DNA of 64,000 bases from Selaginella moellendorffii (Eukaryota > Plantae > Lycopodiophyta), in assembly GCF_000143415.4 (NCBI RefSeq), contig NW_003314267.1, positions 186,001 through 250,000 of the forward strand, given 5' to 3'. The position numbers were made by a program, and so were the translations under genes. Positions 13,001 through 59,567 of the stretch are shown here, one piece after another. The first letter of the stretch is position 1, and every line of letters starts with the position of its first letter. The notes below the pieces were generated by a model that was given only the letters and a program-made list of their open reading frames with translations, ran no database searches and was not told where the DNA came from.

Positions 13001-13387
13001 ATGTCCAAAGGCACGTTTGAAGACATCCGGAAGAACACTCCAATCCCTGCGAGTGGCTGCTCCCAAACCGTTGTACCACTGCAATGGCGTCCCTTGACAC
13101 GTGGGAAACTCATGCAAACGTCGAGCATCATCCTAAGAATGATATGTGGCAATCACCGTAAAGTGATCAAACTAATGGTACACATCATCCCCAAGATTCC
13201 CATGAAAGAACTCCGGCCGGACGTGAAGATTGGCACCAAGAGCAGGAGGAGTTGTACCACGTGCCGTGAACGCTGCCATCAACTGAGTTTGGTTGTTCAA
13301 TTGCAAGCGCATAGCATCAAGCAATTATACCAACTATTGCTTCAGAGTCAAAGGAGGAGATTGTTGATCTGCCATGGAGACAAATGA
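10002..13387 (-). pseudogene. gag-PR-RT-RNaseH-integrase Zn finger of outer gypsy element, fragmented
   Basis: Gag (LHHLCQGPSESVMQF, GPVPMEVD), RT (KLDLASGYWQ, NFIDD), RNase H (MDASDI, EKECLA, DADALSR), HHCC (HDSPVLGGH..CVWC); many stops and frameshifts. Confidence 0.9.
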
Positions 13388-37595: not shown

Positions 37596-38933
37596 TCACA
37601 AGCCTTGGACGAGACCAAGGTTGAGCGTGTCACGGACCATAAGAACAATCCCCAGTGCGAGTATGAGCAAGATCCCCGACGACATGATCCCCTGTTCTAT
37701 CTTGTCGGGCAGCTTCTTCCCACCCCTCAGCGCCTCTAGCGCGATCAAAGCCAGATAGCCTCCGTCCAGCGCCGGGAGTGGCAAGATATTCACCACTGCC
37801 AGATTCAAGTTGAGCAGCGCTGCGAACTGGAACAGCCCTGCAACGTCCGACCTCGCAACCTCGGCCCCCACCGCAACAATGGCCACCGGGCCCGAGACTT
37901 TGTCCGCTGTTTGAGCGAAGTTCACCACCACCTGCGCCAATCCCTCCACGACTTTGCTGCCCAGCTTCCAAAACTCGCGGCTAGCTTGCACGGTGGCGTC
38001 CGCCAGATCTCTGGCCTTCACCCGGAAGGTCTGGATGTTTGGCGAGAGCTGGACGCCGATCCTTCCATACCCATCCTTGCTCCTGTCCGGGAAGATGTCC
38101 ACGGTCACTGCCTCTCCTCTGCGCTGGAGCAGCATCTGGATCTTCTTTCCCGGCCGCTGCTTGATCACGTCCACGATCTGCATTACCGAGCGCTCGTCAC
38201 TGCGGACTTCCTGGCCGTCGAGCGCGAGGATCACGTCGGCTGGCCGGACCCCGGCTCTAGCTGCGGCCGAGCTCGCGTAAACCTCCGGGACGACGACCCC
38301 CGGCAGGATCTTTTGCTGGAGGAGCCCCACCGTGAGCGTCTGGGTGAAGAGGAGCGTGTAGGCGAAGACGATGTTTGCGAAAACGCCCGCGGACATGACG
38401 AGAACTCTGTCCAGGATGGGCCTGTTCTTGAGCAAGTCGGGATCCTCGGGCGAGAACTCGCTGTCTGGATTGTCGTCCGGGAAGCCCACGTAGCCGCCCA
38501 GCGGAATCGCCCGGATCGAGTACTCCACCTCTTTTCTCTGGAAGGTGGCCAGCTTCGGCCCAAATCCAATAGAGAACTTGCTAACATGGATGTTTTGGAG
38601 CCTGGCCGCGAGGAAATGCCCGGCCTCGTGAACGAGGATGATCACTGTGAGAACTCCCACCGCCTGGAGGACCGATTCCGGGCCTTCTAGTCCTGTTCCC
38701 CCTAGCGCCGAGAAGGCTGGAGGAATTGCCAAGAGCTTCTTCCCGATTCTCCCATGCCGGGACGAAGAGGAATTGATAATTAGCTGCCGCCGCTGCGAAT
38801 CCCTGCGATCTTCTGTGGGATTGAGCCTCGCGACTAGAATCCTGGTGATCGTCCGGGTCTTTCTCGTGAGAATCGTTCTGGATTGCTGCCTGTGCGGGTG
38901 AAGGAAACTGCCTGTTCCATCTAGCAGCGCCAT
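37596..38933 (-). CDS. ARASP: Chloroplast M50 site-2 metalloprotease (ARASP/RseP) with PDZ domain
   Basis: HEAGH zinc motif, FSIGFGP, IPLGGYV, PDZ, NILPLPALDGG; transit-peptide-like N-terminus. Confidence 0.93.
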   Translation of the reverse strand: MALLDGTGSFLHPHRQQSRTILTRKTRTITRILVARLNPTEDRRDSQRRQLIINSSSSRHGRIGKKLLAIPPAFSALGGTGLEGPESVLQAVGVLTVIILVHEAGHFLAARLQNIHVSKFSIGFGPKLATFQRKEVEYSIRAIPLGGYVGFPDDNPDSEFSPEDPDLLKNRPILDRVLVMSAGVFANIVFAYTLLFTQTLTVGLLQQKILPGVVVPEVYASSAAARAGVRPADVILALDGQEVRSDERSVMQIVDVIKQRPGKKIQMLLQRRGEAVTVDIFPDRSKDGYGRIGVQLSPNIQTFRVKARDLADATVQASREFWKLGSKVVEGLAQVVVNFAQTADKVSGPVAIVAVGAEVARSDVAGLFQFAALLNLNLAVVNILPLPALDGGYLALIALEALRGGKKLPDKIEQGIMSSGILLILALGIVLMVRDTLNLGLVQGL

Positions 38934-39152: not shown

Positions 39153-41984
39153 ATGGCGCTGGAGGTCCCCTCCATCGCCGTCGCCTCCAGTAGCAGGAGC
39201 TCTCAATCCTTCGACAAGGCAGCGTTCGCGGCACAGATCCGGCAATGCGCTGCATCGCGATCGCTCCCCGACGCACGGCGCCTGCATTCCGCGATCGCCG
39301 AGGCCGGCGGCGACGATCGCGAGACCTTCCTGGGGAATCTCATCGTCCAGATGTATGGCAAGTGTGGGAGCTTGGAGGACGCGGCAATGGCGTTTGAGCG
39401 GCTGGAGAGGAGGAATGTGTTCTCGTGGAGTATTTTCATCCAAGCGCACGTCCACAATGGCGAGAACGATCGAGCTCTTCAGATCTTGAGGTACATGGAT
39501 TTGAGTGGCGTCAAGCCCGACACTGTGACTTTCATCAGCGTTCTTAGTGCTTGTACCAATGCTCGTTCCTTGTCGCAGGGCAAGGGAGCGCACGAGAGAA
39601 TGCGAGCTACGGGGCTGTGCTGCGGGGAATTCGTGGGTAATTCTCTCCTCAACATGTATGGGAAGTGTGGGGGTGTGGAGGAGGCCAGAGAGTTTTTCGA
39701 GAGCATGACGCACAGGAACGTTATCTCGTGGTCGACCATGGTTGCAGCATATGCCCAGAGAGGAGATCACGACCAAGCGCTGGTTTTGTTCCAGAAGATG
39801 GAGGAAGAAGGCGTAGAGCCAAACGAGGTAACTTTTCTCAGCGTTTTGGATGCGTGTGCTAACGCAGAGGCTGTAGAGCAAGGCGAGATGATCCACCGGC
39901 TGGCGGCAAGGAAGAAGCTGGACGTCGGCCTCATCGTTGGAACTGCGCTGGTGGGGATGTACGGGAAGTGTAGCCGGCTGATCGAAGCGAGACAGGTGTT
40001 TGACGGTATCGTGGAGAAAGACGTGGTGACTTGGAGCACCATGATCTCGGCCTATGCCCAACTTGGTCATGTCCGAGAAGCGATCCAACTCTTCGGGTAT
40101 ATGAACTTGGACGGTGTAAGGCCCAACGAGATCATCCTCATGAGCATTCTCGGGGCGTGCTCTAGCGCCGGTGCTCTAGCTGAAGGCAAGATGACACATG
40201 AACTCGTTGTCATCTGTGGATTTGGAGCAGACGTCTCCACTGGGAACACACTTATTAAGATGTACGGTAAGTGTGGAGACTTGGCATCTGCGAAGGCCGT
40301 GTTTGGAGGGATGGAGAGAAGGGACTTGATCTCCTGGTCGGCAATGCTGGCGGTCATTGCCGAGCACGGGCACTGCAAAGACGCTTTTGTTCACTTTCGG
40401 AGGATGGATCTAGAGGGTGTGAAGCCGGACTACGTGACTTTCGTCAGCTTGCTGGACGCCTGCTCTCTCTTGGGTGCCTTGGTCGAGGGGAACGTAATCC
40501 ACACACGGATAAGAGCCGAAGGTTTTCAGTCGGTGATGTATATCGAGAATTCCCTCATCGACATGTATGGGAAGTGCGGGAGTTTACAGGCTGCCAGAGG
40601 GATCTTCGACCGTATGAGTCACAGAAACGTGATTACCTGGACTACGATGATCACGGCGTGCGTCCAGCACGAGCAAGGGAAAGAAGCTCTTGAGTTATTT
40701 GAGGAGATGGAGAAGGCGGGTGTGGCTCCGAATGCAGTGACTTTGGTAGCCGCTTTAGATGCGTGCTGCATCTCTGGGGCTTTGGACGCGGGAAGGGAAA
40801 TCCATGCAAGGATATCTGCGAGTGGGATCGAAACAGACAGGATATTGACATCGCTCGTCGACATGTACGGGAAGTGTGGGAGTTTAGAGGATGCGAGGAC
40901 GGTTTTTGAGAAGATCAAGGGACGAAGGTGTGTTCCTGCCTGGAACGCGATTATCCGGGCTCATGCAGAGAACGGCCATGGTCAAGTCCTTCAACACTAT
41001 CGCCGCATGAACCTGGAAGGACTAACGCCAGATGACATCACTTTCACGACAGTTCTTACTTCCTGGTCAGACTTCGGCAATCTCAACGAAGTGAAAGAAG
41101 TCCATCATCAACTTCGAGCCGGTGGCTACGAGTCCGATCTCATACTCGCGACAGCGCTCGTCCACATTTACGGGAAACTCAAGAGTCTCGAAGATGCCAG
41201 GTTTTTGTTCGACCGAACGGCAAACAAAGACGTGGTTATCTGGAACGCAATGCTGGGTGCCTACGCGAGCCAGGGCCTCGGGAAGGACGCGCTGGAGCTC
41301 TACTCAGAGATGGATCTAGCACCAAACGACACCACCTTTATAAGCGTCCTGGAGGCGTGCGCCAGCACTGGCTCCATCCACAAGGGCCGCGCAGTCTACT
41401 CACGTATCACAGAAGCTGGATTCGACTCCAACGTCCAAGTCGCTACCTCACTGGTGTACATGTTTGGGAAGTGTGGGAAGCCAGAAGAAGCGAGGCTTGT
41501 CTTCGACAAGATGCGCGAGAAGACGGTGGTTTCATGGACGGCCATGGTCGCAGCCTACGCGCAGCAGGGCCACGGAGCGCAGGCACTGGAGCTGTTTCAA
41601 GAGATGGATCTGGAAGGAGTCCAGCCCGATCAAGTGGCCTTCTTGAGCATCATCCATTCGTGCAGCCACTCGGGCCTGGTGGAGGAGGGGCGGATTTACT
41701 TCCTCAAGATGGTGGAGGACCAAAGCTTTACGCCAGGGGTGGAGCACTTTGTGGGGATGCTCGACTTGCTTGGGAGATCTGGGAAGCTCAACGAGGCTGA
41801 GGAGCTGATGGAGTTCATGCCAGTGGAGCCGGGTGTTGTCGGCTGGAACACGCTGCTGTCGGCCTGTAAGACGCACAACGACACAGAACGAGCTGGTCGG
41901 GTTGCTGGTGGCATGCTTGTGCTCGGGCCGGGCCATGCGGGACCGTATGTATCATTCTCCAACATCCTTTCTGGTAAAGGTTAG
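39153..41984 (+). CDS. PLS-class pentatricopeptide repeat protein ending in an E-type domain, no DYW
   Basis: Repeated MYGKCG / SW(T/S)TM / PDxVTF triplets; ends EHFVGMLDLLGRSGKL..WNTLLSACKTH..GPYVSFSNI. Confidence 0.95.
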   Translation: MALEVPSIAVASSSRSSQSFDKAAFAAQIRQCAASRSLPDARRLHSAIAEAGGDDRETFLGNLIVQMYGKCGSLEDAAMAFERLERRNVFSWSIFIQAHVHNGENDRALQILRYMDLSGVKPDTVTFISVLSACTNARSLSQGKGAHERMRATGLCCGEFVGNSLLNMYGKCGGVEEAREFFESMTHRNVISWSTMVAAYAQRGDHDQALVLFQKMEEEGVEPNEVTFLSVLDACANAEAVEQGEMIHRLAARKKLDVGLIVGTALVGMYGKCSRLIEARQVFDGIVEKDVVTWSTMISAYAQLGHVREAIQLFGYMNLDGVRPNEIILMSILGACSSAGALAEGKMTHELVVICGFGADVSTGNTLIKMYGKCGDLASAKAVFGGMERRDLISWSAMLAVIAEHGHCKDAFVHFRRMDLEGVKPDYVTFVSLLDACSLLGALVEGNVIHTRIRAEGFQSVMYIENSLIDMYGKCGSLQAARGIFDRMSHRNVITWTTMITACVQHEQGKEALELFEEMEKAGVAPNAVTLVAALDACCISGALDAGREIHARISASGIETDRILTSLVDMYGKCGSLEDARTVFEKIKGRRCVPAWNAIIRAHAENGHGQVLQHYRRMNLEGLTPDDITFTTVLTSWSDFGNLNEVKEVHHQLRAGGYESDLILATALVHIYGKLKSLEDARFLFDRTANKDVVIWNAMLGAYASQGLGKDALELYSEMDLAPNDTTFISVLEACASTGSIHKGRAVYSRITEAGFDSNVQVATSLVYMFGKCGKPEEARLVFDKMREKTVVSWTAMVAAYAQQGHGAQALELFQEMDLEGVQPDQVAFLSIIHSCSHSGLVEEGRIYFLKMVEDQSFTPGVEHFVGMLDLLGRSGKLNEAEELMEFMPVEPGVVGWNTLLSACKTHNDTERAGRVAGGMLVLGPGHAGPYVSFSNILSGKG

Positions 41985-42344: not shown

Positions 42345-43969
42345 ATGGCTTGTTACATTTGTTCTTATGCTTGCTATCATGAATTTGTGCAGGAATCAGC
42401 CATGTTCAGAGCAACGATTTTATCATACTCTTAAAATGCAACAGGACCAAGCACTCTCTGATTGGAATGTATCAAACAGCCACAACTTTTGCCAATGGTT
42501 CCTCACAACAGTGTAATTTCCCTACCTCAATGGCACAGTTTCTCCTGCTCTGAGAAACCATGCTGCAGAAGTGCAAGCAGTCTACCTTCAGCGGAATCTG
42601 AGGCATCTCAGGCTCTCTCAGGTTCTCTCACAACAACTTCCAAGGCATCTTTGATTCATTTCTCACCTGCACTGGACTTGTCAACAATTTTTACTGGAAG
42701 AGTTTCACCTCAGGATGTGTATTTCAAACACCTCACCTGGAAAACAATCTTTCAGGAGGTAAGCATATTTGTTAAATGAATATGGTTTGTTAAACCCTTA
42801 ACTCAAGATTCTTGCTGCTCTATCCAAGTGCACAAAACTGCAGCATTTGGATTTCAGCCAACGAGCTACAGGACAGTCAGATCACACAATTGGGACCATT
42901 GCAGATTCCTTGATCTCAATAGCACTGGGATATCTGGAGCAGTGCCTGAACATCTGAATGCCTTCTGGCCAGAGCTAAGGATACAACTCTCCGGTAACAA
43001 GCTCTTAGGTGGCGTTCCTTCAAACTGGAGTTTTTCGACCAGCATCAAAAGGATTGACATCTCACTAATGGTCCCATTCCTACAAATTGGAGCAAGAGCC
43101 TCAGATGGCTGGACCTCTCTCACAATAACTTTGAAGGAACAATCCCAGATTTCTGCTCCAAGGGATCTGCTGCAGAACTTGAGTACGTATGTGAAATAAC
43201 TTGTCTGGCGAGATACCATCCATAGGCACGTGCCCTAAACTCCAGTCTTTGCAACTGTGCTACAACACCTTGCATGGCCACCTTCCTTTGGATCTTAATA
43301 ACTGCTTGGCCCTTCGAGAGCTCAAAACCGACCAGAACAACCTGGAAGGCGAGATATTCCGAAACTTCCCCAGATTTACGATATCCACGCAAATCCCTGC
43401 CAACTTATCATCCTCCAGATTATCGTCAACGTCACGCATTCCATAGGCAGTATGCAGCTGCTGGTCCTATCAATGGCATTCAACAACTTGCGCTGCATGG
43501 CCAACCTTGCAAACCTCCACATCCCCAATCTCTCAAACAACTATCTTACAGGTACATTGCATAATTTAACCAGATTCACCGATATGTTGTTGGTGGATCT
43601 TTCACACAATCGCTTGCATGTCTTATTCCTTCAAGCATTGCAGAGCTTCAACTGAGTAGCTTTAGTGTGGTGGACAACAACTTGAGTGGGAAAATTCCCA
43701 CAGCCAATGTCTTCAACACAAATTTTAAGCTAGTTTGAGGGAAATCCAGGGTTGCATAGATGCCTAAATTGTTTTTTGTTGGTGTGCAATCTAATCCAAA
43801 TGACCTTCAGAAGGATGCCAATGCAAGCAATAATAGTGATTGTTTCCTACTTTTAGCTTTTATTTGGCTGCTATGGTGGCATTTTGTACGACTCTTTGTG
43901 CCTTATTGGGACATCACTCATAAATTTCTTGGCTACATGCCCACCTTTTGCAAACTGGAAATGTGGTGA
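42345..43969 (+). pseudogene. LRR receptor-like protein pseudogene
   Basis: LRR fragments (LSGNKLLGGVP, LCYNTLHGHLP, LSNNYLTG, VDLSHNRL, EGNPGL) scattered across frames with stops. Confidence 0.8.
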
Positions 43970-44189
43970 CATTTGCTCAACTTCAATCCTAATAATTTAA
44001 TTAAATTTTTAGATATCACATTGTGCATAACTCTTATATCAATTATCACTCAAATTTGGTGTCCATGGATAAAACATATAAGGTGTATTAATGGATTAAT
44101 GCTAAGAAAAACTTAAAGAAAATAACTCACTTCCTTTTCCTTATGGCATTGCCAGTAAATTAGGGATCACAATATGATGCTCCAAGCAT

Positions 44190-44520: not shown

Positions 44521-44758
44521 CTGTGATACTATGTCATACTCTGGATTGACTTTGAATGGGCCCTTTGAGTCATTTCTTTTTTGTTTTCTTCACTAGACTC
44601 GTTGTTGACACGGCAATTGTTATATTTGACAGCAGAAATTTCTTGTGAATACTTTGAATATGCAGTAAAGATTGACTTCCTTCTGCTTTTTCTTTTTGAC
44701 TCACATATGGTGTAAGTGTTGTTTATAAGTCCGTGAAATATTGGAAAACACTGAAGTC

Positions 44759-46969
44759 ATGTTTGCCTTGATTTGTTTTCTCTGTTTTCTTACAGTTGTA
44801 GCGAATACAAAAGACACTGACACATTGTGGCGCTTCCAAAATGCTGTTGTTGATCATTCAAAAACTCTGAAGTCTTGGAATGGGAACCAAAGCACTCCTT
44901 GCAAGTGGGATGGTGTAACTTGTTCTGAGAAAGGTCGGGTGATTGAGCTTAGCCTCCAATCCTTAGAACTATCCAGTTCTCTTCTTGCGACCACAATCCA
45001 GGAGTTGGGATGTCTTCAGGAAATGCATTTATATCAGAGTCTTTTCACAGATACATTGGAAGGGATATCTTTGCAATCTTACTCTTTAAGAGTGCTCAAT
45101 ATCTCCAGAAATCAGCTCACTGGAAGTTTTCCAACTGAGCTCCTTGGCAATTGTCCACACTTGACTCGGCTTGATCTCTCGCATAACCAGCTCAATGGCA
45201 CAATTTCATCAGAGCTGAATTGCAAGAGTTTTGAGTATCTGGATCTTTCAAGCAATCAATTCACAGGAAGAATACCATCACAATTGATCAAAACTTGCAC
45301 CAATTTGCAAAATATTTCACTTTCTGATAACAAGTTCTCTGGCACATTTTCCCTTTATGATTCCAACAAAGTTCATACGCTCAACCTGGCAGGAAATAGA
45401 TTCTCCACATTTCAAATCCACTCAGATGAGGCATGCAAGAATCTAATTGAGCTGGATATTTCCTCCAACAACATCTCTGGAAAACTTTTCCATGGACAAG
45501 CTAAGTGTTCTTCACTCAGACTGCTTAAATTCTTTTCCAACTCATTCTCAGGGACATTCATAGAACTTCTAGGCAGTCCAAGCTTAAGCAAGAACTTCTT
45601 ACCATCTCTTGAGCTTCTGGATGCAAGCTATAATCGTATTTCTGGTGAAGTTTTGGGAATCCATGACAGACTTCTCTTTCTGAATCTCAGCTCCAATAAT
45701 CTCAATAACACTCAAAACAATGTGTGCTCTTTATCATCTCCTTCCAGACTCAAAAGCCTACTATTGCCAAACAATAAGCTTGTTGGTGGAATTCTTTACT
45801 CTGTACTGAGTTGCACTAGTCTGGAGATGCTGGATTTGAGTTTCAATACATTGAGTGGAAACATACCAGTGACACTCTGCAACAAGCTTCCACGCCTCCG
45901 CCACCTTCTTGCATGGGTGAACAAACTTCAAGACACCATTCCATCCAGTCTTGCAATGTGCTCCAACTTGACCACAATAATCTTAAGTTACAACATGCTC
46001 GAAGGAGTCATTCCTCCAGAGCTCTCACGGCTTCAGAATTTGAATTGGCTATCTCTCAGCAGCAACAGGCTTATCGGAAGCATTCCCTTGTCTTTCGAGG
46101 AGCTGAATCAAATCCAAACTCTGCAACTTAGCAATAACTCTTTACAAGGTGATATACCTTTGGGCTTGTCCAAGAACAAGAATCTGCTTATGGTGGACTT
46201 GAGTAACAACTATTTCTCTGGAAGAGTTCCTGCTCGTATTGGCCGAAACGTAACGAGAGAGCTAGTGTTTGGGAAGAATTTTGTTACTGATACCGATTTG
46301 GGGAACTGCAAATTGTTGGAGGTTCGACAATCTCATTGCAAGATGGATAATATGTTGGAGATGCAAGGAATTCTTTTAGAAGATTTGAAGAAGCGTTTAA
46401 ACACTCTGGTTCATCCAGAGTGCTCCTGGACGATATTGCTATATGGTAGTCATTTCAAGATGGAGGTTTCAAGCGCCATGGTGCTGGATTTGTCACACAA
46501 CAATCTAAGCGGCCAGATCCTGGCAAGCATTGGTGACATGCGCAGTCTACTCAAGATGGATCTTTCTCATAACTTCCTATCAGGCCCAATTCCAGAGTCC
46601 ATGGGAAATCTTGATAACATCCAGACCTTGGATATTTCTGAGAACTCATTGAGCGGAACGATTCCAGGCTCTCTTACTTTGCTGAACACTCTCTTCAGCC
46701 TGAATGTTTCCTACAACAATCTATCAGGCTTGATTCCTCAGGGAGGCCAGCTTACAACTTTTCAAAGCAGCAGCTATGAAGGCAATCCAGGATTGTATGG
46801 CTCTCCTCTTACTTACAATCACACGTCTTCAAGGAATTCCACCACAGCAGAGGAGAAGACCCAAGAGGTTGATGGAAGGGACGAGGAACTTCTAGCTGGA
46901 GCTTTGCTATTTGTCATATCTTTTGTAGTAGCTACAATCATAGTGACATTCAAACTAAAATTTAAATAA
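44759..46969 (+). CDS. LRR receptor-like protein with BRI1/BRL-like ectodomain and island domain, TM, no kinase
   Basis: Signal peptide, PCKWDGVTC cap, ~20 LRRs, ~75-aa island, terminal LRRs, IPQGGQLTTF..YEGNPGL, acidic juxtamembrane, TM, KLKFK stop. Confidence 0.9.
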   Translation: MFALICFLCFLTVVANTKDTDTLWRFQNAVVDHSKTLKSWNGNQSTPCKWDGVTCSEKGRVIELSLQSLELSSSLLATTIQELGCLQEMHLYQSLFTDTLEGISLQSYSLRVLNISRNQLTGSFPTELLGNCPHLTRLDLSHNQLNGTISSELNCKSFEYLDLSSNQFTGRIPSQLIKTCTNLQNISLSDNKFSGTFSLYDSNKVHTLNLAGNRFSTFQIHSDEACKNLIELDISSNNISGKLFHGQAKCSSLRLLKFFSNSFSGTFIELLGSPSLSKNFLPSLELLDASYNRISGEVLGIHDRLLFLNLSSNNLNNTQNNVCSLSSPSRLKSLLLPNNKLVGGILYSVLSCTSLEMLDLSFNTLSGNIPVTLCNKLPRLRHLLAWVNKLQDTIPSSLAMCSNLTTIILSYNMLEGVIPPELSRLQNLNWLSLSSNRLIGSIPLSFEELNQIQTLQLSNNSLQGDIPLGLSKNKNLLMVDLSNNYFSGRVPARIGRNVTRELVFGKNFVTDTDLGNCKLLEVRQSHCKMDNMLEMQGILLEDLKKRLNTLVHPECSWTILLYGSHFKMEVSSAMVLDLSHNNLSGQILASIGDMRSLLKMDLSHNFLSGPIPESMGNLDNIQTLDISENSLSGTIPGSLTLLNTLFSLNVSYNNLSGLIPQGGQLTTFQSSSYEGNPGLYGSPLTYNHTSSRNSTTAEEKTQEVDGRDEELLAGALLFVISFVVATIIVTFKLKFK

Positions 46970-46976
46970 TGCATGA

Positions 46977-47000
46977 AAGCTCTATTTCGTTAAAGTGGGA
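46977..47000 (+). repeat. Left TIR
   Basis: Exact reverse complement of 59544-59567. Confidence 0.95.
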
Positions 47001-47418
47001 ATTGTCATTATCCCACTTGTAAAATAAGGTTTCCAAACCTTTATATAGTATATAAATATAACAAAATTCAATTGCATTGAGGCACATGCCATTTTATTTT
47101 AAACAAGGAAATGTCTACTCAATCACTTCTCCTCCCCTTGCCACTGCTTCACCTCTCTCTTCTCCTTGTCATCGTCGTCCAATTTCTTTCCATCCTTTTA
47201 ATATTGGCTCAGTTGCTCCGAGTCTAGGTGGAGCCCAAGTCCCCATTCAATCTTTACTTTCCCCTTATTAATAAAACAACTTCGTAGACTTCCAATAACA
47301 TGTTGTAACACTTCTAGTATAATGCAAATCCTCTCAAAGAATTGTCTTTTAATATTAATACAATGGCATGGAACCCCATGCCATAATAAGTTACATTTTT
47401 AAATAAATACATGCCATC

Positions 47419-50400
47419 TCAGACTGTTATTTTTTGCCTCCAACGCCTATACAATAATCTTGGAATTTCATCACTCTCCACACTATCAGGATTTAAACCC
47501 AGTAGTAATGCCATCTCTTCTCTAATACGTCCACGCTCATGTTCAGTGGTCGAAGAACCCATCCGGTTGAGCAGATTATGGAGATGCGGATAGTGCTTGG
47601 CTAGACAATATACATGCCATAAATGATGACTGGTGTCTGTCTGATCAAATGGCTTCTGATATACCGTTCCATCTGCCATTTGGTTGATTTCTGCAGCCAC
47701 CTCCTGGACTGGCCGGTTCTCTATCACCATCGCTCCAAGCCGTTTTGCAAGGTCCCCCAGAACATACGGTTTCTTCTCCCTAGTTTCCATACTGCAAGAG
47801 ATGGGGTGCACTGCATATGTGTGCGTGTTCGCTGCAGTTTTAATCGGCGAGTCATCGATGATGAGGATTTCACTTGAGCTAGCAGTCCGGTTCATCACTA
47901 CAGCCTCTGGCTTGACGAAGATGGGCTTGCTACCCCTCACATGGACCATAGTCAAGCAATCCTCCTGTGTTAGGAGAAAGTCAAATGGTAATATTACTCG
48001 CGTCTGATCGTGCATCATCTGTAGCAACGTTAATGCATTGTGGCACATCATGGATGTCCAAACTCCCAATTGCAAATTGAACCCGGCCCTCTGTTTTAAG
48101 TGTCGCATGGTCATTATTAGATCCCGCAGTTTCTCCCGTGTGATTAATGTGAATCTGTCTCTTTTGACCAACTTGCGACCGCAGGCTTTGGAGGGTGCAA
48201 TGACATTCGAGGACGAGCCACGCTCATGGGAGAAAAGGACACCGTTCAGATCAAAAACGATACAGTACCTTCGCCGTGACTCTGAAATGAAATGTGTCAG
48301 CATAAAAAATGGTACAAGTCAATTTTACCATCTACAATATTAGCGAATGTTGCTCCCGATGGTCGTTGAGAGGGTTTTGGTCGAGGAAACGTGAAGGGCG
48401 GAAATACTCTCCTCTGCAATGTGGGGTCAATCGCATCTGATGGCGTGTGGGCACATGCCATTTCAGCTGTAGACTCTGGTACAACTGGCTCAACAGTGGC
48501 ATGGGGTGGTTCCGATGGCGTGTGATCACACGCCATTTCAGCTGGTGCCTCCGTTGGCAAAGTGGACATGACCGAACAGGCAGCAAGGGCGGTGTAGGGA
48601 GGTTCCAACGGCGCGTAGTCAGACGATTGGGCACACGTTGAGTCCGTTGGAAATGAGGATACGACCGGCTCGGCGGCTGGGGCGGCCTCATGTGGGTCCA
48701 ATGGCGCCTGGTCACCGTTAGTTGGATACGTGGACAAGATTGACTCAGTGGTATGGGCAGCATCAAGTGGAGCGTGGTCAGCTTGCTTGGCGTTGATATG
48801 GATAGTAGCCTCCACCAGCTCTGATGACTCTTGCAGCCAAGTAGAGTCCACTGGCGGATCCATATGCATGTCCAAATATCTCCCTTCGATTGAGATGGTA
48901 TCCTCCCGTGCTACTAAAAACAAACTCATTAGCACATTGTATCGACTATACTGTATTTACCATCAACTGCTATTGAGGAACTAGGACCGATATCACTTGG
49001 GCGCACTGCTGATTCTGAAGGATTGGACATACGTTTTGACCCTTGCTTGGCACTATCCTTCCTCGACACTAAAGGCTAGAGTTTGTAAATTCAACTGAAT
49101 AATCTCTACTTACCATTTGCTCTGCGACCTACATGGACAATGTTAGAAATGGTAAAAGGTTAGGAATGGATGTACTATTATTTACCTGATGGTTTGTCTT
49201 GTATGACCTTCCTCCGTTGCTCTTTGGCCACCTCAGGCTGGCCATCATCGTCATCATCGTCGTTGTCGTTATTGTGATCGTCACCATTGTGAGGACCATC
49301 CAAGTCCTCTTCGTCCTCCTCTTCTTCGTCCTCCTCTTCTTTGTCCTCCTCTTCGTCCTTCTGCTCTTCCTGCTCATTATCTTTCTCTGGCTCCTCATCC
49401 CCCTCCTGCATTTCTTCCATAGGCTGCTCAGGCTGGATGGCTTGTTCTTCCAGGACCATCTTGGGAAAATCATCTGGCCGAGTCTCCATCTCAAAATACA
49501 AGACATCCATAGCCTGTTTTAGTGCGTCACCTAGGACCGTATCCTCACCCGACTGTCTTAACATGGTTTCTGCACGTTCTTGCACCCTTCGAAGACGACG
49601 AGATGAGAAAAACGTGGCCCTGACTTGAAAAGCATCCCTCATCCATTGTACCTCTCCATTGAGATTGGGGAAGGGGAGTCCGCCATAGGAATCTGAGTCA
49701 TGAGGTGGTGACTGCCTGCTTTCACTCAGCCCTTGATCTGCAATGAATGGCATGAGCACACACGCCATAACCGCGAGGCATTACCTATCATCTTTTCGTT
49801 GCCCTTCTTCCTTTTCAAATCAAACGCCTCTGATCTCGACGACTGTCCAACGTGCTTTCGCTTTTTATGACCACTGTCAGTTTGAGCTTGGCTGGTGCTT
49901 GCCTGTTTTGCCTTTGAAGAAGTTTCTCCTGCAAGGAATGGCATGAGACCACACGCCATTGCAAATATAATTTGTACCTCCTTTTTTCCTATTGCTTGTC
50001 TGTTTGTCCTTCTTCGATGCGCCACCAGTGTGCTTTTCAGTCCTCGTGTCTGAATATTCACAACGATCTATAATCAAAATGGCATAAGGCCTCACGTGAC
50101 CTTACCTTGTGCAGGTTGTGAGCTCGGCCCAACATGGGTATCTTCAACATTAGCTGTTAACGCCGTTTCAGCATCTGGGGGTGGCCACGCTCCTGCATAC
50201 AGAGCTTGTGAGATAACATTTAAACTTAAAGTGTGTACTCACCAGGTTCACAGAGAAGATTTGTTTTTCTTTAGCAACTTTAATTATATGCTCCATTGAA
50301 GTCACCTCTTCAATGGAGTTTGTCACCGCAACACACGGGACACTCTTGAGTAGTGCGGCTCGAAAGAATAGTCCGCCGCAGTTGTACTCGACAACGCATT

Positions 50401-52811
50401 TGCCCGGAAGCAGGTGACCCACCCGCTATTGCGTTGAAGACCCAGCTGAGCATTTCCCATGCTGCACCTGGAGCTTTCTTTGGATTCGAAAGCTCCATAG
50501 CTGTCTTCAGTTCCTCAGGCATGGGTAAATTGACCTCCCTCAGATCAATTCGATTGGCCTTGTCGAACGAAGCTGGGAAGTCACTCCAGTCCCACTCTGT
50601 TGCAGGACCAATAACAAGGGCGAGTGTGAAGATGCGGACATTCGTCGGTATCTTCTTCTTAGCCATTATCCCATGGATCTCCCGCATCTCCTTGCCTTTC
50701 AACCGAGCCTTCACCTCGTTCAAGGCCTTCCAGAACTTGTGATAGGATTCGGAGTCGTAGATCATATAGTGGACTGAAGATTCCACCTCCGCAAGTCCCA
50801 CCATTAAGTCAATGATGGAGCTGACTTCGTCTGCATGAGTGATTTCCTCGTTTGTGAAGTCCATCACACAAAAGATGTTCTTGACCTGCTCATCTCCGCG
50901 GGAAACGATGCTCCTCCACCTTTGATCCTCATCCGAATTCAAGTATACCCGGTAAGGTTCTCGATAGGCCTCTGCTGCGGGGTCGAGCTGTTTCTGAAGC
51001 CGACGGTCGACATCAATCTTAATGAAATTTGGATACTGATCCAACTTCTCAGCTTTACTTTTCGTGGCATCCCGCAGCAGATCGATGAACTTGGGGGCCC
51101 CCTTCATGTACTCGTCGATGTCTTCATTTGACAACTCCAGCGCTTCCATCATCTCTTGCGTGGTGTCGGTGCTCACCCTCTCCACGGCCACTTGCTCGAA
51201 GATCCAATCCTTCAATAGCGCACGAGCTCTCAGAGTCGTGCACAAGTCCTCGTATGTCACAATATGGCCGGGAGTCATTTTGGTCTTGTTGAAGACTACC
51301 TCACCACGTAGAAGAGCATTAGCCACTGTCAGAAGGTCGTCGTCGTCTAGAGACCGCAAGAAACGCAAGGCATTGAGCTTCAAATCATTGGGCTTCCGGC
51401 CGTCCTCCACACCCATTGAGTTTGGCAACTCCCCGTCATGGTACCTCCTCAGCACATCTACCCATTTGTCAAAAACAACTTTTGTGGCGAGTAGAATGTT
51501 ATGGATGCTGAGTGTGTCATTGACCCCTAGTGTTTTCGAGAGAAGACTCGAGAATTCCTGCAATGGAAATGGCGTGAGGCCACATGCTATGCCACATGCA
51601 ACGAGGCTTACCTGCCAGGCGCTAGTTGCTAGTGCACGTCCTTGTCCTGGTTTTTGTGGCTTCTTCAGTTGAACCCAGAGCTTCCGTGTTCGTGCCAATG
51701 TCTCGTGCAGACCCGATTTGTAGCACGTTTCTTGCTTGACATTCTGCGCGTGGGAGATGTATATGATAGATCGGAGGGGCGAGTTGCCTTTTATCAGGCG
51801 GACAACTCTTGTCTTGAAGACTTTCTTCACCTCCTCGCCCACCATAATATCCACAACTATCTCTTGCATCGCCAAGCTAGAATGCTGCCCGGAGACGGCA
51901 TAGAACCGGATGTTCTAATCGTCCAACACCTTCCTATTGATCAAGTCTGGAAACCTCGTCTCGCCCTTCATTGTTCGGTAGTAGGGGATCACGTCTGCGA
52001 TGTCGGGTGTTACTGGACTTGCCAGCATCTTCTGCTTCAGTTTCTCCACCCACTCATCAGATACTAGCCTATGGTTGTATTTGCTTTGGATGTCGATACG
52101 GCTCACGTCGATTGTATATACTTTGTTGGAATAGTAACAAGTACTATTATCTGCAACGATTTTTGCTGCCTCTTCTTGCTCTTTCTGCTCTTTGCGGCTC
52201 TTCTTTTTGGTGGGTGTAGTGTTTGAACCCGAGGCAATGGCATCACTGAGTAGCTTCTTTTTTGGAGCAGGAGAGTCGGACGTCGGCTTGAGCTTGACCA
52301 CCCTTTTCTGCTTCGAGGTAGTTTCCAGATCGACCCCCTTCCCCTTTGCTTCGCGAACTGGAGTCACTCTCAACGGCTCAATATTGGAATATAGTTTTTG
52401 AACATCGCCGTAGGTGAGGTCCGTGGATTCCATGAGATCTTCATAGACCCGCAGCGTCTTTGAAATTGTGGGCCTCCTGGACAACCTCTCCCGAGCTCCC
52501 TCTAGGAATTCCTCATAGCCGCTACCCCCCTCCAGGAAGCCGCTAGGATGTGCAAGGTGGATCTTGAAGGCAGACGCTGTCTCTACCACAAGTGCCAGTC
52601 CATATTCTTGCATGGAACTGCATGGAGTGTCTGTCACTTGGATGAGGATCCCCATGCATTCTTTTCTCCCACCATCTGTGTTGTACAGCCTCAGATCCTC
52701 GCCTTCCATCCCGAAAGTCCAACTGGTGAGCTCCTCCCCCTTCTCTGCATCCACATTGACAGTGGCTGGAAGAAGAACGCAATTCCTCGCCTGTTCAGAA
52801 ATGCACAACAA
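47419..52811 (-). pseudogene. Transposon cargo gene (~1600 codons, ~9 short introns): ParB-like domain, helical region, degenerate MTase-like segment, acidic/low-complexity linker, C-terminal FCP1/NIF-type HAD domain
   Basis: ORFs join in frame over GT-AG introns (e.g. 51558-51611, 50050-50105, 49929-49977, 49738-49784, 48282-48328). In-frame TAG at 51915-51917 and frameshift near 50423. Motifs FYAVSGQHS, PGKCVVEYNCGG, IVFDLNGVL..VWTS..K..IIDDSP. Confidence 0.7.
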
Positions 52812-54285
52812 TTAGAGCTGACAGATGAAAAGCTAGTAGCTGGAAATAACGTGAGGCCACACGCCATTCACCACTGCATCAGATGTCTTGAGGCTGCATC
52901 CTAAGATGGCGTGAGGCTACACGCCATCTGTAACCGGACTGCACTCGAGAGCCCAATCGGTGCATGCCAATGTTGCTACTGAATGGCATGTGGCCTCATG
53001 CCATTTTCTACTTGGCCTAAAAGACTTACCATTTGAAGCCGAATGGAGGCGTGACAACCGGACTCGCTGGCGAATGTGCACTGTGTGTGCAGCGGATCGT
53101 AGCAGCAAGGCTACTCTGCCACTTACAGTTGGAGAGTGGCGCTGAAATCTCCCGGGACGCCAAGTGGGCTGCGTGTGGGTGGCGGAGTGGGCGGCGGAGT
53201 TGGCGGCGAAGTTACAAACTGGGTGTGTCTTGAAGTGGACGCCGATGCACACGAGCGCGATGCGAGCGCGAGTGTGATGCAAGCGCGAGTGGACGCCGAT
53301 GCACACGAGAAACCTGTAGAGAAGTGGGAGCGCGATGCGAGCGCGAGTGGGAGTGCAATGCGAGCGCGAGTGTGCGAGCGCGAGTACGAAGCAAAATGCA
53401 AAACCTAACCTCACACGCGCGAAATGTCACGACGGTTGGTAATCCCGCCACGTCATCATTTCTCGGACTTGGGCGCCACCATTAATTTCTGGATCGGCGC
53501 GCGCATGCGTGAAATCCAAAAGAAATCCGCAACGTCATCATTCCTCAGACTGCATGCACGCGAAATCCAAAAGAAAGATCATGATTGGGATATCATTTAA
53601 TACCCTCGCTATATTTATACCATGCATGATTGGATATTCCAAAGCATCTTGTATTTCCAAAAATGCCAGATGTTCAGCTAAATAAATTGTCAGAGGATTT
53701 GATGTGACGTTCAAGCATGTGGGCTCATGCAATTTTGATCCCAAAAAATGCACCAAAAAATGCTCGGCGTCATCTGGCGTTATCTCTTGAATGGCGTGGG
53801 GCCGCATGCCATTTTTAGGAGCACATAGGAGTATATTCCTAGAATATTCTGACACACGCGAGATTGTTTTGAGTTTCCTGGAGATCCAACCGTTAGATCG
53901 CAACCAGATTTTACAAAATGGTATACAATGTCCTTGTTGATGACCCTGCAAAGAAGCATCTAGATCGGACACCACATGAGACCACACGAGCCTTACAATG
54001 TTTCAGGGGCATTTGCCATAGATCCGACCGTTATTTTGCTCCAAGATTCTACAGTTTGGTGTGCATTGACCTTTCCATCGACACTGCAAAGGGACATCAC
54101 AATCAGATGCGGGATCACAAGAAACCAACTTCACTAACTCTGGTTTCACCAAGATCTACGTAAGGAATTATGAAATGAAAGGACCCTCTCTATTGAAATG
54201 TGTTTATGGTCCTAGGGGCATTGTGACATATCAAAGGATTTTGCATCAAGTTCTGTATTTGCATGTTTATCAAGCTACTGAATTG

Positions 54286-54318
54286 CTAAACCCTAAACCC
54301 TAAACCCTAACCCTAAAC
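54286..54318 (+). repeat. Short plant telomere-type repeat tract (CCCTAAA)~4
   Basis: CTAAACCCTAAACCCTAAACCCTAACCCTAAAC. Confidence 0.9.
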
Positions 54319-55438
54319 ATGTGGCAAATGCTGCGTGAAGAAAGATGCCCTTTCTGGGTAAATGCTGTAAGAGGCAGATGCCGAGCAGATGTATCTCAGG
54401 CTAGCGAAGGGGACAAACGAAAGCTAGCTATAAACATGACGGGATGCAAATAGATTACTAGGCTGGTCCTGCGAAAATCAAAAACCATAATTGAAAACAT
54501 TGAAAATGCAAAAAGAAAGGTTTATAATATTTTTGAATTTTAAGCAACCAAAGGAATGTAAGTAGGGCATCTGTTTGTAAGTTTAAAAATGCCTCAATCA
54601 CTTAAATTCCCAAGTAAATAAAGCTGTTTCTATTTTTGGTACAGGTAAACTTTATAGCGTGTGGGCTCATGCAATTTTGAACCCAAAAATGCACCAAAAA
54701 ATGCTCGACTAGCATTATTCTTTGAATGGCATGTGGCCTTATATTGCCATAAATGGACGTACACACACAGCATAATTATTCCTTTACACGGCAAATAATC
54801 TTGGTGCGGATCGCTGACATGGCATGGCAAAGTTCGAATCACTGACATGGCACAGCTGGATCGAGGCAAGGACATGATGTGACAAAGTTCAACCTCCGAC
54901 AGCAAAGTCTAGAAGCTACTCCGTTTGAAATTTGTCAGAGGAATCATAAGATCTGGTTTGTCAGAGGATTTGATGTGACGTTCAAGCGTGTGTTATTTTT
55001 GAATTCTCGAACTCATTCCTAGGTCTATCATTTTTGTGCGCCGTGTTCTTGGTTCCGCTGAGCGCAGTGAGCGCTGCTTGTGTAAGCGGCGTTGTGAGCT
55101 ATGGTTTATGCGTCTACAAGCGGTTGCGGCATTGCGAGCGCCATTGCGAGCGGCAGTTTATGCGAGTGGCAGTTTGTGCGAGCGGCACTACGAGCAGTTG
55201 CGGTGTTGCAAGCGGCGCTACGAGTAGTTGCGGTGTTGCGAGCGGCACTGTCTTTGGTGTGGCTACCGCTTCCTTTTGATATTCGGCACTTGTGCTTCCT
55301 GGTATGTTCACCATGGAATGGTTTAGGACCACATTTAGAAATGGCATGAGGCCACATGCCATCTTGGGCCCTTGCAATTTCATGGCTAGCGTATTGTCAT
55401 GTATGTTTTTACTTGCCTGCAACTGTGTGTATATCAAG

Positions 55439-55630
55439 ATGGCATGAGGCCTCATGCCATCTTTGGCCCCTACTAGCCTATTGCCATATTCCTTTTGCCT
55501 TGCTGCAACTGTATATATTTTTGTATGGGTGACTAGTCACACACACAAAAATATATACAGTTGCAGCAAGGCAAAAGGAATATAGCAACAGGCTAGCAGG
55601 GGCCAAAGATAGCGTGAGGTCTCATGCCAT
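55439..55630. repeat. 192-bp near-perfect loopless palindrome
   Basis: 96-bp arms centred on GTGACT|AGTCAC (55534/55535), each end capped by a 22-bp palindrome copy. Confidence 0.92.
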
Positions 55631-55809
55631 TAGTGGTACCACTAATGGCATGAGGGCTCATGCCAATTTTGTGAATGCGAAATTTCACGTGGGTGTCAAT
55701 AGCATGTTTGAATAATGGCATGTGGCCTCATGCTATTTGGTATGTTATGATTTAGGCCATTCTCCAATCATTTTTTGTATGGTCTTAACTTCTTTTCTGC
55801 ACTTTCAGA

Positions 55810-58800
55810 ATGGCCTTCAGGGTTGGGGAAAAGGTTTACATTTTGAATGGTGGGAAGAGAGTTGCAAAAGGGACCCTTGTGTCTATGGATCGGAACTTTG
55901 TTATACACTGTCAAAGGCTTGGGGAAGGCAATGCTGCTGTATCAGTAGAGACTGTCTTCGATGGGAATGTGGTCGCTATTGAACGAGGAGAGATGGTCGT
56001 CAGGGTAAATGTTGTTGTTGCCTTGAAAAATCTGCAGAAGAAAGCAGATGTTGGGGACAGCGCAAGTGCGACGCATGTTCCCTCCGTGGATCTTAAGAAC
56101 CGTGCTACATGGATTCAGGCAAAGGTGTTTCTAAACAACCCCGAGGGGGAGGTGGTAGCTGAGGGCTTAGCCACAGTTGTCGATCCAAGAGATGCGGTTG
56201 CTAATCAAGAATTGGGCTGGGATGATATTGGAGTTGCGATTTTAGAGGTTGTTGACACAGAAGAAAACAATCTGACTATTGGAAGCATTGTGCGGTGGAA
56301 ATTGAGGCATTTAGTGTTTGAGAATGTGAAGGATTCACAATCAAACACCACTACAACTAATGACAGAACATCTCTTCATGGGAAAAGAAAGTACACCTTC
56401 CTACAGCACAGCCAAAGGGATCTGAGCAACGAACCGAAAAGTCAGAAAATGGCGATGGAGGTTCGAATGGTCTCGACAGTTGCTTGTTGCAAGAGGAGGT
56501 GCTGTCAACATGCTGATTGGGATGCTATTGAAGAGGAGAGAGCAAGATACAAGACATTGTCCTGGAAGGCAGCTTGCAATTTTGTGTATGAGGCATTACG
56601 GTCATCTGTTGATGCTTCAGAACATCAGGTGGGGGGCATGGTCTTCCAGAGGGGTTTGGTCTGCATGAAGGCATGGAGAATTATTTATGGAGTCCCTCGA
56701 AGCACATTCTACAGAATCAAAACTGAGTTCGAGGAACAAAGGGTTCAACAGGCAGTCCATGGGAACGACGGTACGCACAAAACCAGGGGTCATGTTGTAT
56801 ATGGAGAGGCAATCTTCAAGAGGTTTGTCGAGACATGTAGCGAGTAGCAACCACATAAAACACGCCTCTTGGAAGATGGAACACGAGACACCCAACGAGT
56901 TCTCCCTTCCATGTATACCGAAGGGGCCATATTGGAAGATGTGAATCGGGAACTCCAGAGTAATGGCTACAGGAAGCTGAGTCAATCTAGATTTAGTAGA
57001 TTGTGGAGCAACAGGTTCAGGGATGTGAGTATAGGAAAGTACTCCAGCTTTTCAAAGTGTGACGAGTGCATTGCTATCAAAATGGCTTTGTCGAAGAATT
57101 CTTGCAGTGCTCAAGAGCGAGAGACGTTGGTTAGAAGGCGGCTCGACCACAACATCGAGCAGAGAAGCTGCAAGACTGCATATTGTCATAACAGGATTCT
57201 CTCCATGGAGAGACCTGACTCTTACCTCTGCATCATCCATGACAAAATGGACCAGAAAAAGACGTGCTTACCTCGACTCAATCCTGCCCCCAAGGCAATC
57301 TCTTCATCCATGCAGCTGCCTGTGTCTCTGTTTGGCATAATCGCTCATGGGCATGGTGCCCAGAACTATGGGAACTTCTTTGTACCTCTATGGGGTGGCG
57401 GGGGTGCAAACATGATGATTGCGTCCCTAGCAAAACACTTAAGGTCTCTGCAAAGTGCGCAGACTGAGCTGAACGGCCAACCCTTGCATAAGGCCCTTGT
57501 CGATCGAACCCCATACAGGGTTCAGCTGGAGGAGGAGCAAAGGCTTGCAGTATCGCGTGGGGCCCCATGCCATCCCAGTGAATATGTTGGCCGTCAGATT
57601 GTAGGGTTATCACGTGAGGCCTCATGCCATTCCGACGAGGCTGGTCGCCCGGTGAATGCACAGCCTCATCCAAACAAAGCAGAATCTCAAGGAAGTTCTT
57701 GCGGCCGATGTGGCCTTCCACCCCATCTTCTGCTCCAAACAGACAATGCTGGCAGTGAGAACAAAAACATGTACGTCTTCGCGTGCTTGGCGATGCTTGT
57801 TGCCAAAGGCATATTTGAAACGGTTACACTTGGCTTTCTCATGGTTGGGCACACTCATGAAGACGTCGATGCCATGTTCAGTCACCTGGCAGAGTCCCTC
57901 CGGCGATCCAATGTCCTCACCCTCCCACAACTCTACGATGAATTCCAAAATTGCATCAAAGGCACTGTTGAAGCTGCACTTGTGACAGAGGTTCCAGACT
58001 TTAAGGGGTTTGTAAAAGGCTACATCAGGGACGGATCCGAAACGCTGATTGGCCACTCCAAGCCTCTTCAGTTTCATTTCAGCATGCGTGACGGTGCTCC
58101 AGTGATGAGGTACAAGATGAGAGAATGGGACATAGTGTGGCTGCCAGTGGATGGCATTGAACTCTTCAAGAGAGATCCCATAACTGGGGAACCTATGATT
58201 CCTCAGGGTTCCCCACGGCCGATGCACCCGGATGGACTCAAAGACCAGGAAAGTATAGTGGCCGGGATTAGACAGCATATTGCCTTCTGGAAGAGGGGGT
58301 TGGTGTTTGGTGGAGAATCCTATTTTAAGAGGTGCAAGCCTTTGCTCGAATACTGGGAGAAGATTATATCTGCTATCCAAAATGGGCCGGTTGTATATGA
58401 AGAATTGGAAGAGTCCTTTTGGCCAGAACCCAGAGCACCAGATAGTAGCGGAACAATGTCCTCTGGAAATGCAGTGACAGATAACGATGTTGAGGATCAC
58501 TATTGTGGGCCGAGGAACAAGAAGCCGGATTCAGCATTCAATCCAGTACAGGTCTGCAAAGGAATGGTCGTGCTTGTCAGACCCAGTAATAAAAAACAAA
58601 TGATATGGGTGGGGCGCTGCATCACTGATGCAGAGGAGGACGCGGAAACTAACTCCTTCAATGTAACTGTGGAGTGGTTCAAGCCAAGTTCCGGATATAC
58701 GAAGGATTGCCTAGAAAAAAGATGGGTGCTGAATCCAAGGGATCCCAGCATGAGCATATCGGTGGATAATGTTGTGCATGGTTGGATGCGGAAGCAGAGT

Positions 58801-58951
58801 GCCACCATCACCTTGCCAGACCATGCAAGAGATGCAGCAAGAGCATTCATAACCCGGGTTCAAGGTGAGATTCATTAATATTCCTTTACTAAGTTTCTAA
58901 TGTATTTTATTTCAAGGTGAACAATCCGAATCTGAATCAGAGGAGGCATGA
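55810..58951 (+). pseudogene. Sola1-like DDD transposase (~1030 codons) with one in-frame TAG and a terminal intron
   Basis: ORFs 55810-56847 and 56869-58878 share a frame across TAG 56845-56847. Motifs FSKCDEC, IIHDKMD, LQTDNAGSENKN, FLMVGHTHEDVDAMFS. Intron 58865-58916 yields the terminus GEQSESESEEA*. Confidence 0.82.
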
Positions 58952-59543
58952 TGGCATGTGGCCCTTTGCACTAGTATATCTTAATACCGGTCTGAGAAAT
59001 AGAATGGCATGTGCCCTCAGGCCTTTTACTAAATCACCTTTGAAAGAAATGCAAACCTCTATGTCGTAAAAAAAAGGTACTAGAGAAATTCCTTAATAAT
59101 ATGAATGTTATTTAGTTTCATGAAAATACACTAAGGGTCAAATGAGTTAAATGACTTCTCCAGACTAGCAATGCCTCTTGCTACACCTTCACAATTAGAT
59201 TCGTTAGAAAAAGATAACATTGAATAATATCTAAATGTTCTCACCATTAAGTTATATGTCTGGCTAATAGGAATGACGTTCATCTTGGAAAGCTCACCAC
59301 ACGCTCAATGAACAAACAAATAGTGTGTGCGCGCATGCCATCGCTCTTCTTTAGCTTCAGATTCGGCTTGTTCACCTTGACAATGAGATTTATTATACAA
59401 CCAGATGGACTCAGTCTGGACACAAAGTCACCGCGCTAGTCACCATGCCCCAGATATGTCTAGCCCCTGGACAAAAAACATATAATTTCACGTCATTTTC
59501 AAATACTTGAAAATTTGTACTTAGTCCCATTTTACTGAATAAA

Positions 59544-59567
59544 TCCCACTTTAACGAAATAGAGCTT
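59544..59567 (-). repeat. Right TIR
   Basis: Followed by TSD ATGA. Confidence 0.95.

Follow-up and report, generated by a model that had tools for sequence, protein, structure and literature searches.

We have analyzed a stretch of 64,000 nucleotides from Selaginella moellendorffii (contig NW_003314267.1, positions 186,001 to 250,000 of the forward strand; hereafter the window), and in particular a gene in it for a receptor with a leucine-rich repeat (LRR) ectodomain resembling those of BRI1 and the BRLs. A preliminary description, made from the letters of the window, had proposed here a kinase-less receptor with an ectodomain and an island domain of BRI1/BRL type in a probable non-seed plant. 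The host is indeed a lycophyte. The window matches S. moellendorffii scaffold GL377594.1 with 98.4% nucleotide identity over the gene and has common neighbours with it, and therefore represents that locus in a second haplotype or assembly. We used this scaffold as the reference locus (L001). The NCBI protein model located there (P0001) was the best database match of the studied protein, with 97% identity over the full length, and carries the NCBI name 'receptor-like protein kinase BRI1-like 3' though it has no kinase.

The receptor gene and the absence of a kinase

The open reading frame (ORF) listing gave a single frame, 44741..46969 (+), with the first ATG at 44759, the start of the preliminary description, and the stop codon TAA at 46967-46969. 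The protein consists, in this order, of a signal peptide, an LRRNT cap, about 18 LRRs, an island of about 79 amino acids, 4 LRRs, an acidic juxtamembrane stretch, a transmembrane helix and a tail of 5 amino acids (Table 1). All the peptides quoted beforehand were found in the translation (VCSLSSPSRLKSLLLPNNKLVG, LDLSFNTLSGNIP, LLAWVNKL, NLNWLSLSSNRLIGSIP, HCKMDNMLEMQGILLEDLKKRLNTLVHPECSWTILLYG, SAMVLDLSHN and GGQLTTF), and so was the announced transmembrane segment followed by a stop, in the form of the hydrophobic LLAGALLFVISFVVATIIVTF and then KLKFK. This helix has a single Gly and no canonical GxxxG. The LRRs that precede the island carry the BRI1-like motifs LLAWVN and NLNWLSLSSNRL. The similarity to real proteins is far beyond chance: an annotated protein of S. 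moellendorffii is 97% identical, and the E value to the ectodomain of AtBRI1 is 2e-100. In the reference haplotype the ATG, the frame and the stop are the same, and the ORF is uninterrupted in both haplotypes.

Comparing the two alleles by hand count on a two-row DNA alignment, we found 27 differences in 2,208 nt, 16 of them nonsynonymous and 11 synonymous, which gives a dN/dS of roughly 0.46. The nonsynonymous share (16/27) is under the neutral expectation of about 20/27. The dN/dS is well above that of a tightly constrained hormone receptor, with the reservation that the numbers are small.

The claim that the receptor lacks a kinase was confirmed. The Pfam domains are LRRNT_2 and numerous LRRs, with no kinase among them, and the stop falls 5 residues past the transmembrane helix. 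Searches by tblastn with two BRI1/BRL kinase domains gave no match in the window (64 kb) or at the reference locus (23 kb). A hidden kinase exon was considered and ruled out for the 10 kb downstream in both haplotypes.

Compared to the reference haplotype, the window has an insertion of 12.6 kb (46977-59567) that begins 8 bp past the stop codon of the receptor gene; position 13306 of the reference locus resumes at window 59568. The 3' untranslated region of the window allele is therefore severed from its original downstream sequence. We also considered a transposon insertion as the cause of the kinase loss. This was rejected because the reference allele lacks the insertion and yet ends at the identical stop.

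Table 1. Features of the receptor gene, in window positions.
Feature	Position	Strand	Basis
Complete intronless coding sequence, 736 codons plus TAA	44759..46969	+	ORF list; ATG and stop read directly
Signal peptide, predicted, MFALICFLCFLTVVA, residues 1-15	44759..44803	+	Hydrophobic N-terminus directly before LRRNT_2, read by eye from the sequence
LRRNT_2 N-terminal cap, residues 18-56	44810..44926	+	Pfam PF08263, E=5e-9
About 18 plant-type LRRs ahead of the island, residues ~60-493	44936..46237	+	Pfam LRR_1/LRR_8/LRR_4; collinear with AtBRI1 367-586
Met478, at the AtBRI1 Trp564 position, LRR inner face	46190..46192	+	Gap-free alignment KNLLMVDL / RSLIWLDL
Island domain, residues 494-572, with Cys 527 and 555, MLEMQGILLEDL core and YGSH	46238..46474	+	Interrupts the LRR register
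Four C-terminal LRRs and cap (C3 region), residues 573-684	46475..46810	+	Aligned to AtBRI1 656-767; Pfam LRR_8; predicted local distance difference test (pLDDT) >90
QLTT, QxxT/S loop of the last LRR, residues 664-667	46748..46759	+	Aligned to AtBRI1 Q747-T750
Extracellular juxtamembrane stretch with acidic end EVDGRDEE, residues 685-710	46811..46888	+	Read from the translation
Transmembrane helix LLAGALLFVISFVVATIIVTF, residues 711-731	46889..46951	+	Read from the translation
Cytoplasmic tail KLKFK (5 residues) and stop	46952..46969	+	Read from the translation

Affinity of the ectodomain, the island and the paralogs

The ectodomain is nearer to BRI1/BRL than to PSKR1 or to generic LRR receptor-like proteins (RLPs), as found by HMMER, by Foldseek and by profile-profile comparison. 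Among the sequences of the PDB, residues 284-688 align to AtBRI1 367-771 in a single stretch of 232 bits that goes through the island, while PSKR1, RXEG1 and others match in LRR pieces only. With phmmer, BRI1 reached 341 bits in 3 pieces versus 266 bits in 7 for PSKR1. The island is spanned at >100 bits by 96 of the 120 best database matches, and each of these 96 is either a Selaginella paralog or a protein of BRI1, BRL or SR160 type; RLPs and other LRR kinases among the 120 gave no such alignment across it. Structural comparison was carried out with an AlphaFold2 model of residues 284-700 (alignment of 25 rows, overall pLDDT 82), in which the LRRs are confident. The Foldseek ranks through 22 were all BRI1, BRL3, BRL1 and BRL2 (E 1.7e-28 to 4.8e-22, TM-score about 0.83), with PSKR1 next (7.7e-21, TM-score 0.54) and RXEG1 at 1.4e-17. 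Using hhalign, a profile of four members of the Selaginella family aligned to a BRI1/BRL profile with a score of 726 (E=5e-95) over 399 collinear columns at 39% identity, and to generic island-bearing RLPs with a score of 566 and inserts of >100 residues required. These rankings and profile scores show the family to be closest in sequence to BRI1/BRL, without nesting it in the BRI1/BRL clade.

We also carried out an exhaustive representative search with residues 284-700. Among the 150 matches listed, which are dominated by giant multi-LRR models (1,250-7,800 amino acids) summing many stretches and include no outgroups, only P0001 and P0002 were close kin. Besides, P0094 and P0093 are two divergent BRL-type receptor kinases, one from a transcriptome and the other from a Logan assembly. 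Both have islands that are weak (43-48 bits) by PF20141, the Pfam model of the brassinosteroid receptor island domain, and keep Trp564 and Phe599, and they may be BRLs of non-seed plants.

The assignment of the island itself to the BRI1/BRL type held in part: it stands by profile-profile comparison and fails at the Pfam level and for the island alone, as discussed below. The domain breaks the LRR register at the place of the BRI1 island and has about equal length. Restricting hhalign to the island columns, with the profiles aligned independently, we obtained a probability of 93.4% (P=2.5e-7, 60 columns) against BRI1/BRL islands; in the controls, ten RLP-type islands gave P=0.35 and reversed BRI1 islands P=0.11. 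A hidden Markov model (HMM) of the Selaginella island matches about 100 BRI1/BRL proteins at the island position with up to 11.9 bits, the best reversed decoy reaching 4.7. When the island profile was run against all the PDB, the six best matches were AtBRI1 chains (residues 607-643), and there was no match to the PSKR1 island. The scaffold C…phi-phi-x-phi-QG(I/L)-x-LE(D/E)…C is the pattern of BRI1 C609…LLEFQGI…C635. The Yx8KG and Kx5Y motifs of RLP-type islands are absent from the studied island; KG...Y was seen in the ten RLP-type islands.

Only this scaffold (two Cys, Q-G and L) is invariant across the family. As a single-sequence query the island found only the other allele and P0002 in a local search, and phmmer with the island alone gave nothing in the PDB at E up to 10. 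The island evolves fast. We read it as a true but remote member of the BRI1/BRL type.

The gene is one member of a small family in Selaginella, with five or more dispersed loci, that is kinase-less and has ectodomains closest to BRI1/BRL. At least four dispersed paralogs were found in S. moellendorffii, with 36-52% identity to the studied protein: P0002 (52%), P0003/P0006 (40%), P0004/P0007/P0027 (38%, including a tandem pair) and P0009 (36%). All lack a kinase. Their loci are on other scaffolds or about 370 kb distant, and no kinase gene adjoins any of them. An uninterrupted single ORF was confirmed for P0002 (after correction of the model), P0003 and P0004. The annotation of P0002 has a spurious intron that cuts into the last LRRs; the DNA (L002 8001-10274) holds one ORF of 757 amino acids with the full four-LRR block, the acidic juxtamembrane stretch, the transmembrane helix and a short tail. 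P0004 has GxxxG motifs in its transmembrane helix. In the tandem pair P0007 and P0004, the island copies (L004 5057-5272 and 9537-9752) are 93% identical and 4.5 kb apart. The gene models of this pair overlap; they share a scaffold with the studied gene and are about 370 kb from it. In the P0009 model (940 amino acids, L005 8001-12412) there are two LRRNT caps and, at 9055-9167, a fragment of a second island; the model resembles a fusion of the parts of an incomplete tandem duplication.

The steroid pocket and the proposed role

Pocket residues were identified from the gap-free phmmer alignment (chain 9s87_A, native BRI1 numbering) together with the paralog alignment. Taking AtBRI1 as reference, the studied protein keeps Tyr642, Gly643, His645 and Met657. 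The replaced positions are Trp564 (Met478), Tyr597 (Phe), Tyr599 (Thr), Lys601 (Thr), Gly613 (Asp), Leu615 (Met), Gly644 (Ser) and Phe681 (Leu). The position of Trp564 is occupied by Met, Thr, Val or Met in the paralogs, and by Trp in 6/6 tabulated kinase BRI1/BRL sequences. Mutational data are available for several of these sites. W564H cuts brassinolide binding about 100-fold, and G644D lowers it too (bioRxiv 10.1101/2025.08.08.669299). The function of BRI1/BRL1 needs Tyr or Phe at position 599, and every substitution but Phe impaired BRI1; Y597F is functional in BRI1 (PMC9570414). The studied copy is the most BRI1-like of the family, yet it lacks the two most critical pocket positions, Trp564 and Tyr/Phe599. 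Because both are replaced, the steroid pocket is doubtful, and binding of steroids by this protein appears unlikely.

Compared to BRI1, BRL1, BRL2 and BRL3 (LRR receptor kinase subgroup Xb), the studied protein has the same plant-type LRR ectodomain with an island of about 70-80 amino acids located four LRRs before the membrane. It is collinear with them over about 400 residues at 37-43% identity. The island shares the two Cys and an xxEFQGI-like core, in the form MLEMQGI; the LWxN and NLNWxSLSxNRL motifs are also common to all, as is the QxxT loop in the last LRR. It differs from them by the lack of a cytoplasmic kinase, with a tail of 5 residues in its place, by an island that PF20141 does not see, by an acidic juxtamembrane stretch of RLP type, and in the pocket by Met for Trp564, Thr for Tyr/Phe599, Thr for Lys/Arg601 and Asp for Gly613. 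PSKR1, another Xb kinase, has the LRR ectodomain and the island four LRRs before the membrane and depends on SERK, but it was below BRI1/BRL in every comparison (phmmer and Foldseek) and its island was unmatched.

There is a published precedent for this kind of architecture. Ngou 2024 (PMC10834447) described an island-plus-four-LRR module common to LRR-RLPs and Xb kinases, and reported BRL-like RLPs with no assigned function. The preliminary description had spoken of a free-standing BRI1-like ectodomain. Such an ectodomain is present and has no kinase; however, with its island four LRRs before the membrane it has the ordinary architecture of LRR-RLPs, of which BRL-like versions were reported in that study. 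Like those RLPs, the studied protein is kinase-less, has the island before the last four LRRs and an acidic outer juxtamembrane end, and conserves the SERK-docking C3 region. In contrast, the BRL-like RLPs of Ngou 2024 are said to keep the brassinosteroid-binding residues and the Selaginella family does not, while the typical RLPs have the Yx8KG and Kx5Y island motifs, absent here, and the GxxxG that the studied copy lacks. The AtRLP3/PSY1R pair (PMC10834447) is similar in that the ectodomain of a kinase-less RLP mirrors that of a hormone-type receptor kinase. RLP3 and PSY1R, however, are >70% identical and are found in the same genome, whereas the nearest kinase relatives of the studied protein are at about 40% and no BRL kinase has been reported in the Selaginella genome (PMC3862569; PMC9223546).

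We consider it probable, though well short of certain, that the gene codes for a kinase-less BRI1/BRL-like RLP that depends on partner kinases and has a non-steroid ligand. The island and the inner face of the LRRs would bind an extracellular ligand, probably not a brassinosteroid. Upon binding, the C-terminal LRRs would recruit a SERK co-receptor; the QxxT loop docks SERKs in BRI1, PSKR1 and RXEG1 (PMC10834447), and SERK/BAK1 homologs are present in Selaginella (PMC3862569; PMC9223546). Because the cytoplasmic tail has only 5 residues, the signal would be relayed by partner kinases, namely SERK and possibly a SOBIR1-like adaptor.

Several observations weigh against this interpretation. The island profile reaches only E=0.11 against AtBRI1 in the PDB. 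PF20141 gave no match up to E=10 in the studied protein and 7 Selaginella paralog models; in four BRI1/BRL proteins that have a kinase, two of them divergent, the same domain model scores 106, 74, 43 and 48 bits. In the AlphaFold2 model the island is of low confidence (pLDDT 33-67) and gives no pocket model or geometry. The gap in raw identity is modest, 38-43% with BRI1/BRL versus 33-37% with generic RLPs. Descent from BRI1/BRL is, at sequence level, not separated from a sister lineage that would have retained an ancestral island. The transmembrane helix has no GxxxG, the motif by which RLPs bind SOBIR1. Finally, a dN/dS near 0.5, obtained from only 27 differences, also fits weak constraint.

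The protein could instead be a true binder of brassinosteroids, acting as the steroid-sensing half of a split receptor with a separate kinase, or as a decoy in the membrane, buffering SERKs or the hormone. Such a role could account for the response of Selaginella, which elongates under brassinolide without having a BRI1/BRL kinase (PMC3862569; PMC9223546). The BRI1/BRL-type island in the same position and with the same length, the retained QxxT loop, the kept Tyr642, Gly643, His645 and Met657, the Phe at Tyr597, a change that BRI1 tolerates (PMC9570414), and the plasticity described for the brassinosteroid pocket (bioRxiv 10.1101/2025.08.08.669299) all agree with it. We nevertheless judge it improbable, given a Met in the place of Trp564, non-Trp in the paralogs too, where a His costs BRI1 about 100-fold of its binding, and a Thr at Tyr/Phe599, where substitutions other than Phe impaired BRI1 (PMC9570414). 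The changes Lys601 to Thr, Gly613 to Asp and Gly644 to Ser and the absent PF20141 match point the same way, and the islands of the paralogs are too divergent for single-sequence searches to link, unlike a conserved hormone pocket. A wider version, in which the whole kinase-less family would be a lycophyte sensor of brassinosteroid (or of another sterol or terpenoid), with SERK and a separate kinase completing a split receptor, seems to us very unlikely. If it were true, steroid perception by BRI1-type islands would predate the fused kinase, or could do without it.

Nor do we think that an immune-type LRR-RLP is the likely answer, though it deserves some weight. The protein would then offer a fast-evolving BRI1-like surface for microbial or damage-derived molecules and signal in the manner of Cf-9, RLP23 and RXEG1, through SERK and a SOBIR1-like adaptor. 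The architecture of the island-plus-four-LRR clade, including the acidic outer juxtamembrane end (PMC10834447), would be expected, and so would a family of several copies, two of them in tandem, whose islands diverge strongly, the relaxed constraint between the haplotypes (hand count) and the GxxxG motifs in the transmembrane helix of P0004. The studied copy, however, has no GxxxG in that helix, its island does not match RLP-type islands (hhalign P=0.35) and lacks the KG and Kx5Y motifs, the family profile fits BRI1/BRL better, and there are about 5 loci versus the large clusters typical of expanded immune RLPs. The gene might also be a decaying or functionless relic of a BRL receptor kinase whose frame is open by chance. 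The absent kinase, the lost pocket residues, the dN/dS of about 0.46 from few differences, the 12.6-kb insertion 8 bp past the stop and a degenerate LRR remnant upstream would all suit a relic. We regard this as a slim prospect, since the ORF of 2.2 kb is intact in both haplotypes and the nonsynonymous count of 16/27 is below the neutral value of about 20/27. Besides, the ORFs of paralogs elsewhere are still of full length and preserve the domain order (uninterrupted in the three confirmed), and the conservation of the island scaffold and the QxxT loop across paralogs only 36-52% identical, which requires long-term purifying selection, argues for long-term function.

Published surveys and the surroundings of the gene

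The preliminary description started from the premise that BRI1-family kinases are receptors of seed plants. This is outdated, as ferns and Sphagnum have BRL kinases (PMC9223546; bioRxiv 10.1101/2024.10.09.617452). For S. moellendorffii, both Cheon 2013 (PMC3862569) and Zheng 2022 (PMC9223546) reported no BRI1/BRL homolog, and Sm99902, the 'closest' Selaginella protein of those surveys, is EMS1 (PMC6744412). Peng 2016 (PMC4926431), citing Wang & Mao 2014, gives islands in seed plants only. S. moellendorffii is included in the data set of Ngou 2024 and is not discussed there (PMC10834447). We found no published description of the Selaginella kinase-less family, and a literature search for SmBRL/SmBRI1 gave nothing relevant. 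What was already known is the automatic BRI1-like annotation of the gene and the general concept of BRL-like RLPs, which is published.

Surveys that require a kinase domain state that there is no BRI1/BRL homolog in Selaginella and that islands of the BRI1 type came later (PMC3862569, PMC4926431, PMC9223546). A BRI1/BRL-like ectodomain with a related island exists in a lycophyte, in kinase-less form only, and this qualifies the 'no homolog' statements. The gene and its paralogs are a concrete test case for how receptor ectodomains and kinases evolve as modules (PMC10834447). The family also supplies candidates for the response of Selaginella to applied brassinosteroid, with the proviso that a classical steroid receptor is unlikely in view of the pocket residues. 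Any bearing on the origin of steroid perception, as had been suggested, is speculative.

Upstream of the receptor gene, window 42828-43970 contains the remnant of a different LRR gene, with degenerate coding fragments of LRRs spread over several frames. Of this remnant, 606 bp (43195-43800) are absent from the reference haplotype. The P0001 model (784 amino acids; L001 10001-11140) draws its first 50-odd residues from it and splices to an acceptor (ttacag) within the codons of the signal peptide. The annotated N-terminus may be a mis-model, since both haplotypes have a direct ATG and a canonical signal peptide. Farther upstream, and syntenic with the reference scaffold, are the neighbour genes, one for a Peptidase_M50/PDZ protein (site-2 protease-like) at 37596-38933 (-) and one for a pentatricopeptide repeat (PPR) protein of 943 amino acids at 39153-41984 (+). 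This neighbour stretch is GC-rich, with 0.54-0.58 versus about 0.40 for the receptor gene.

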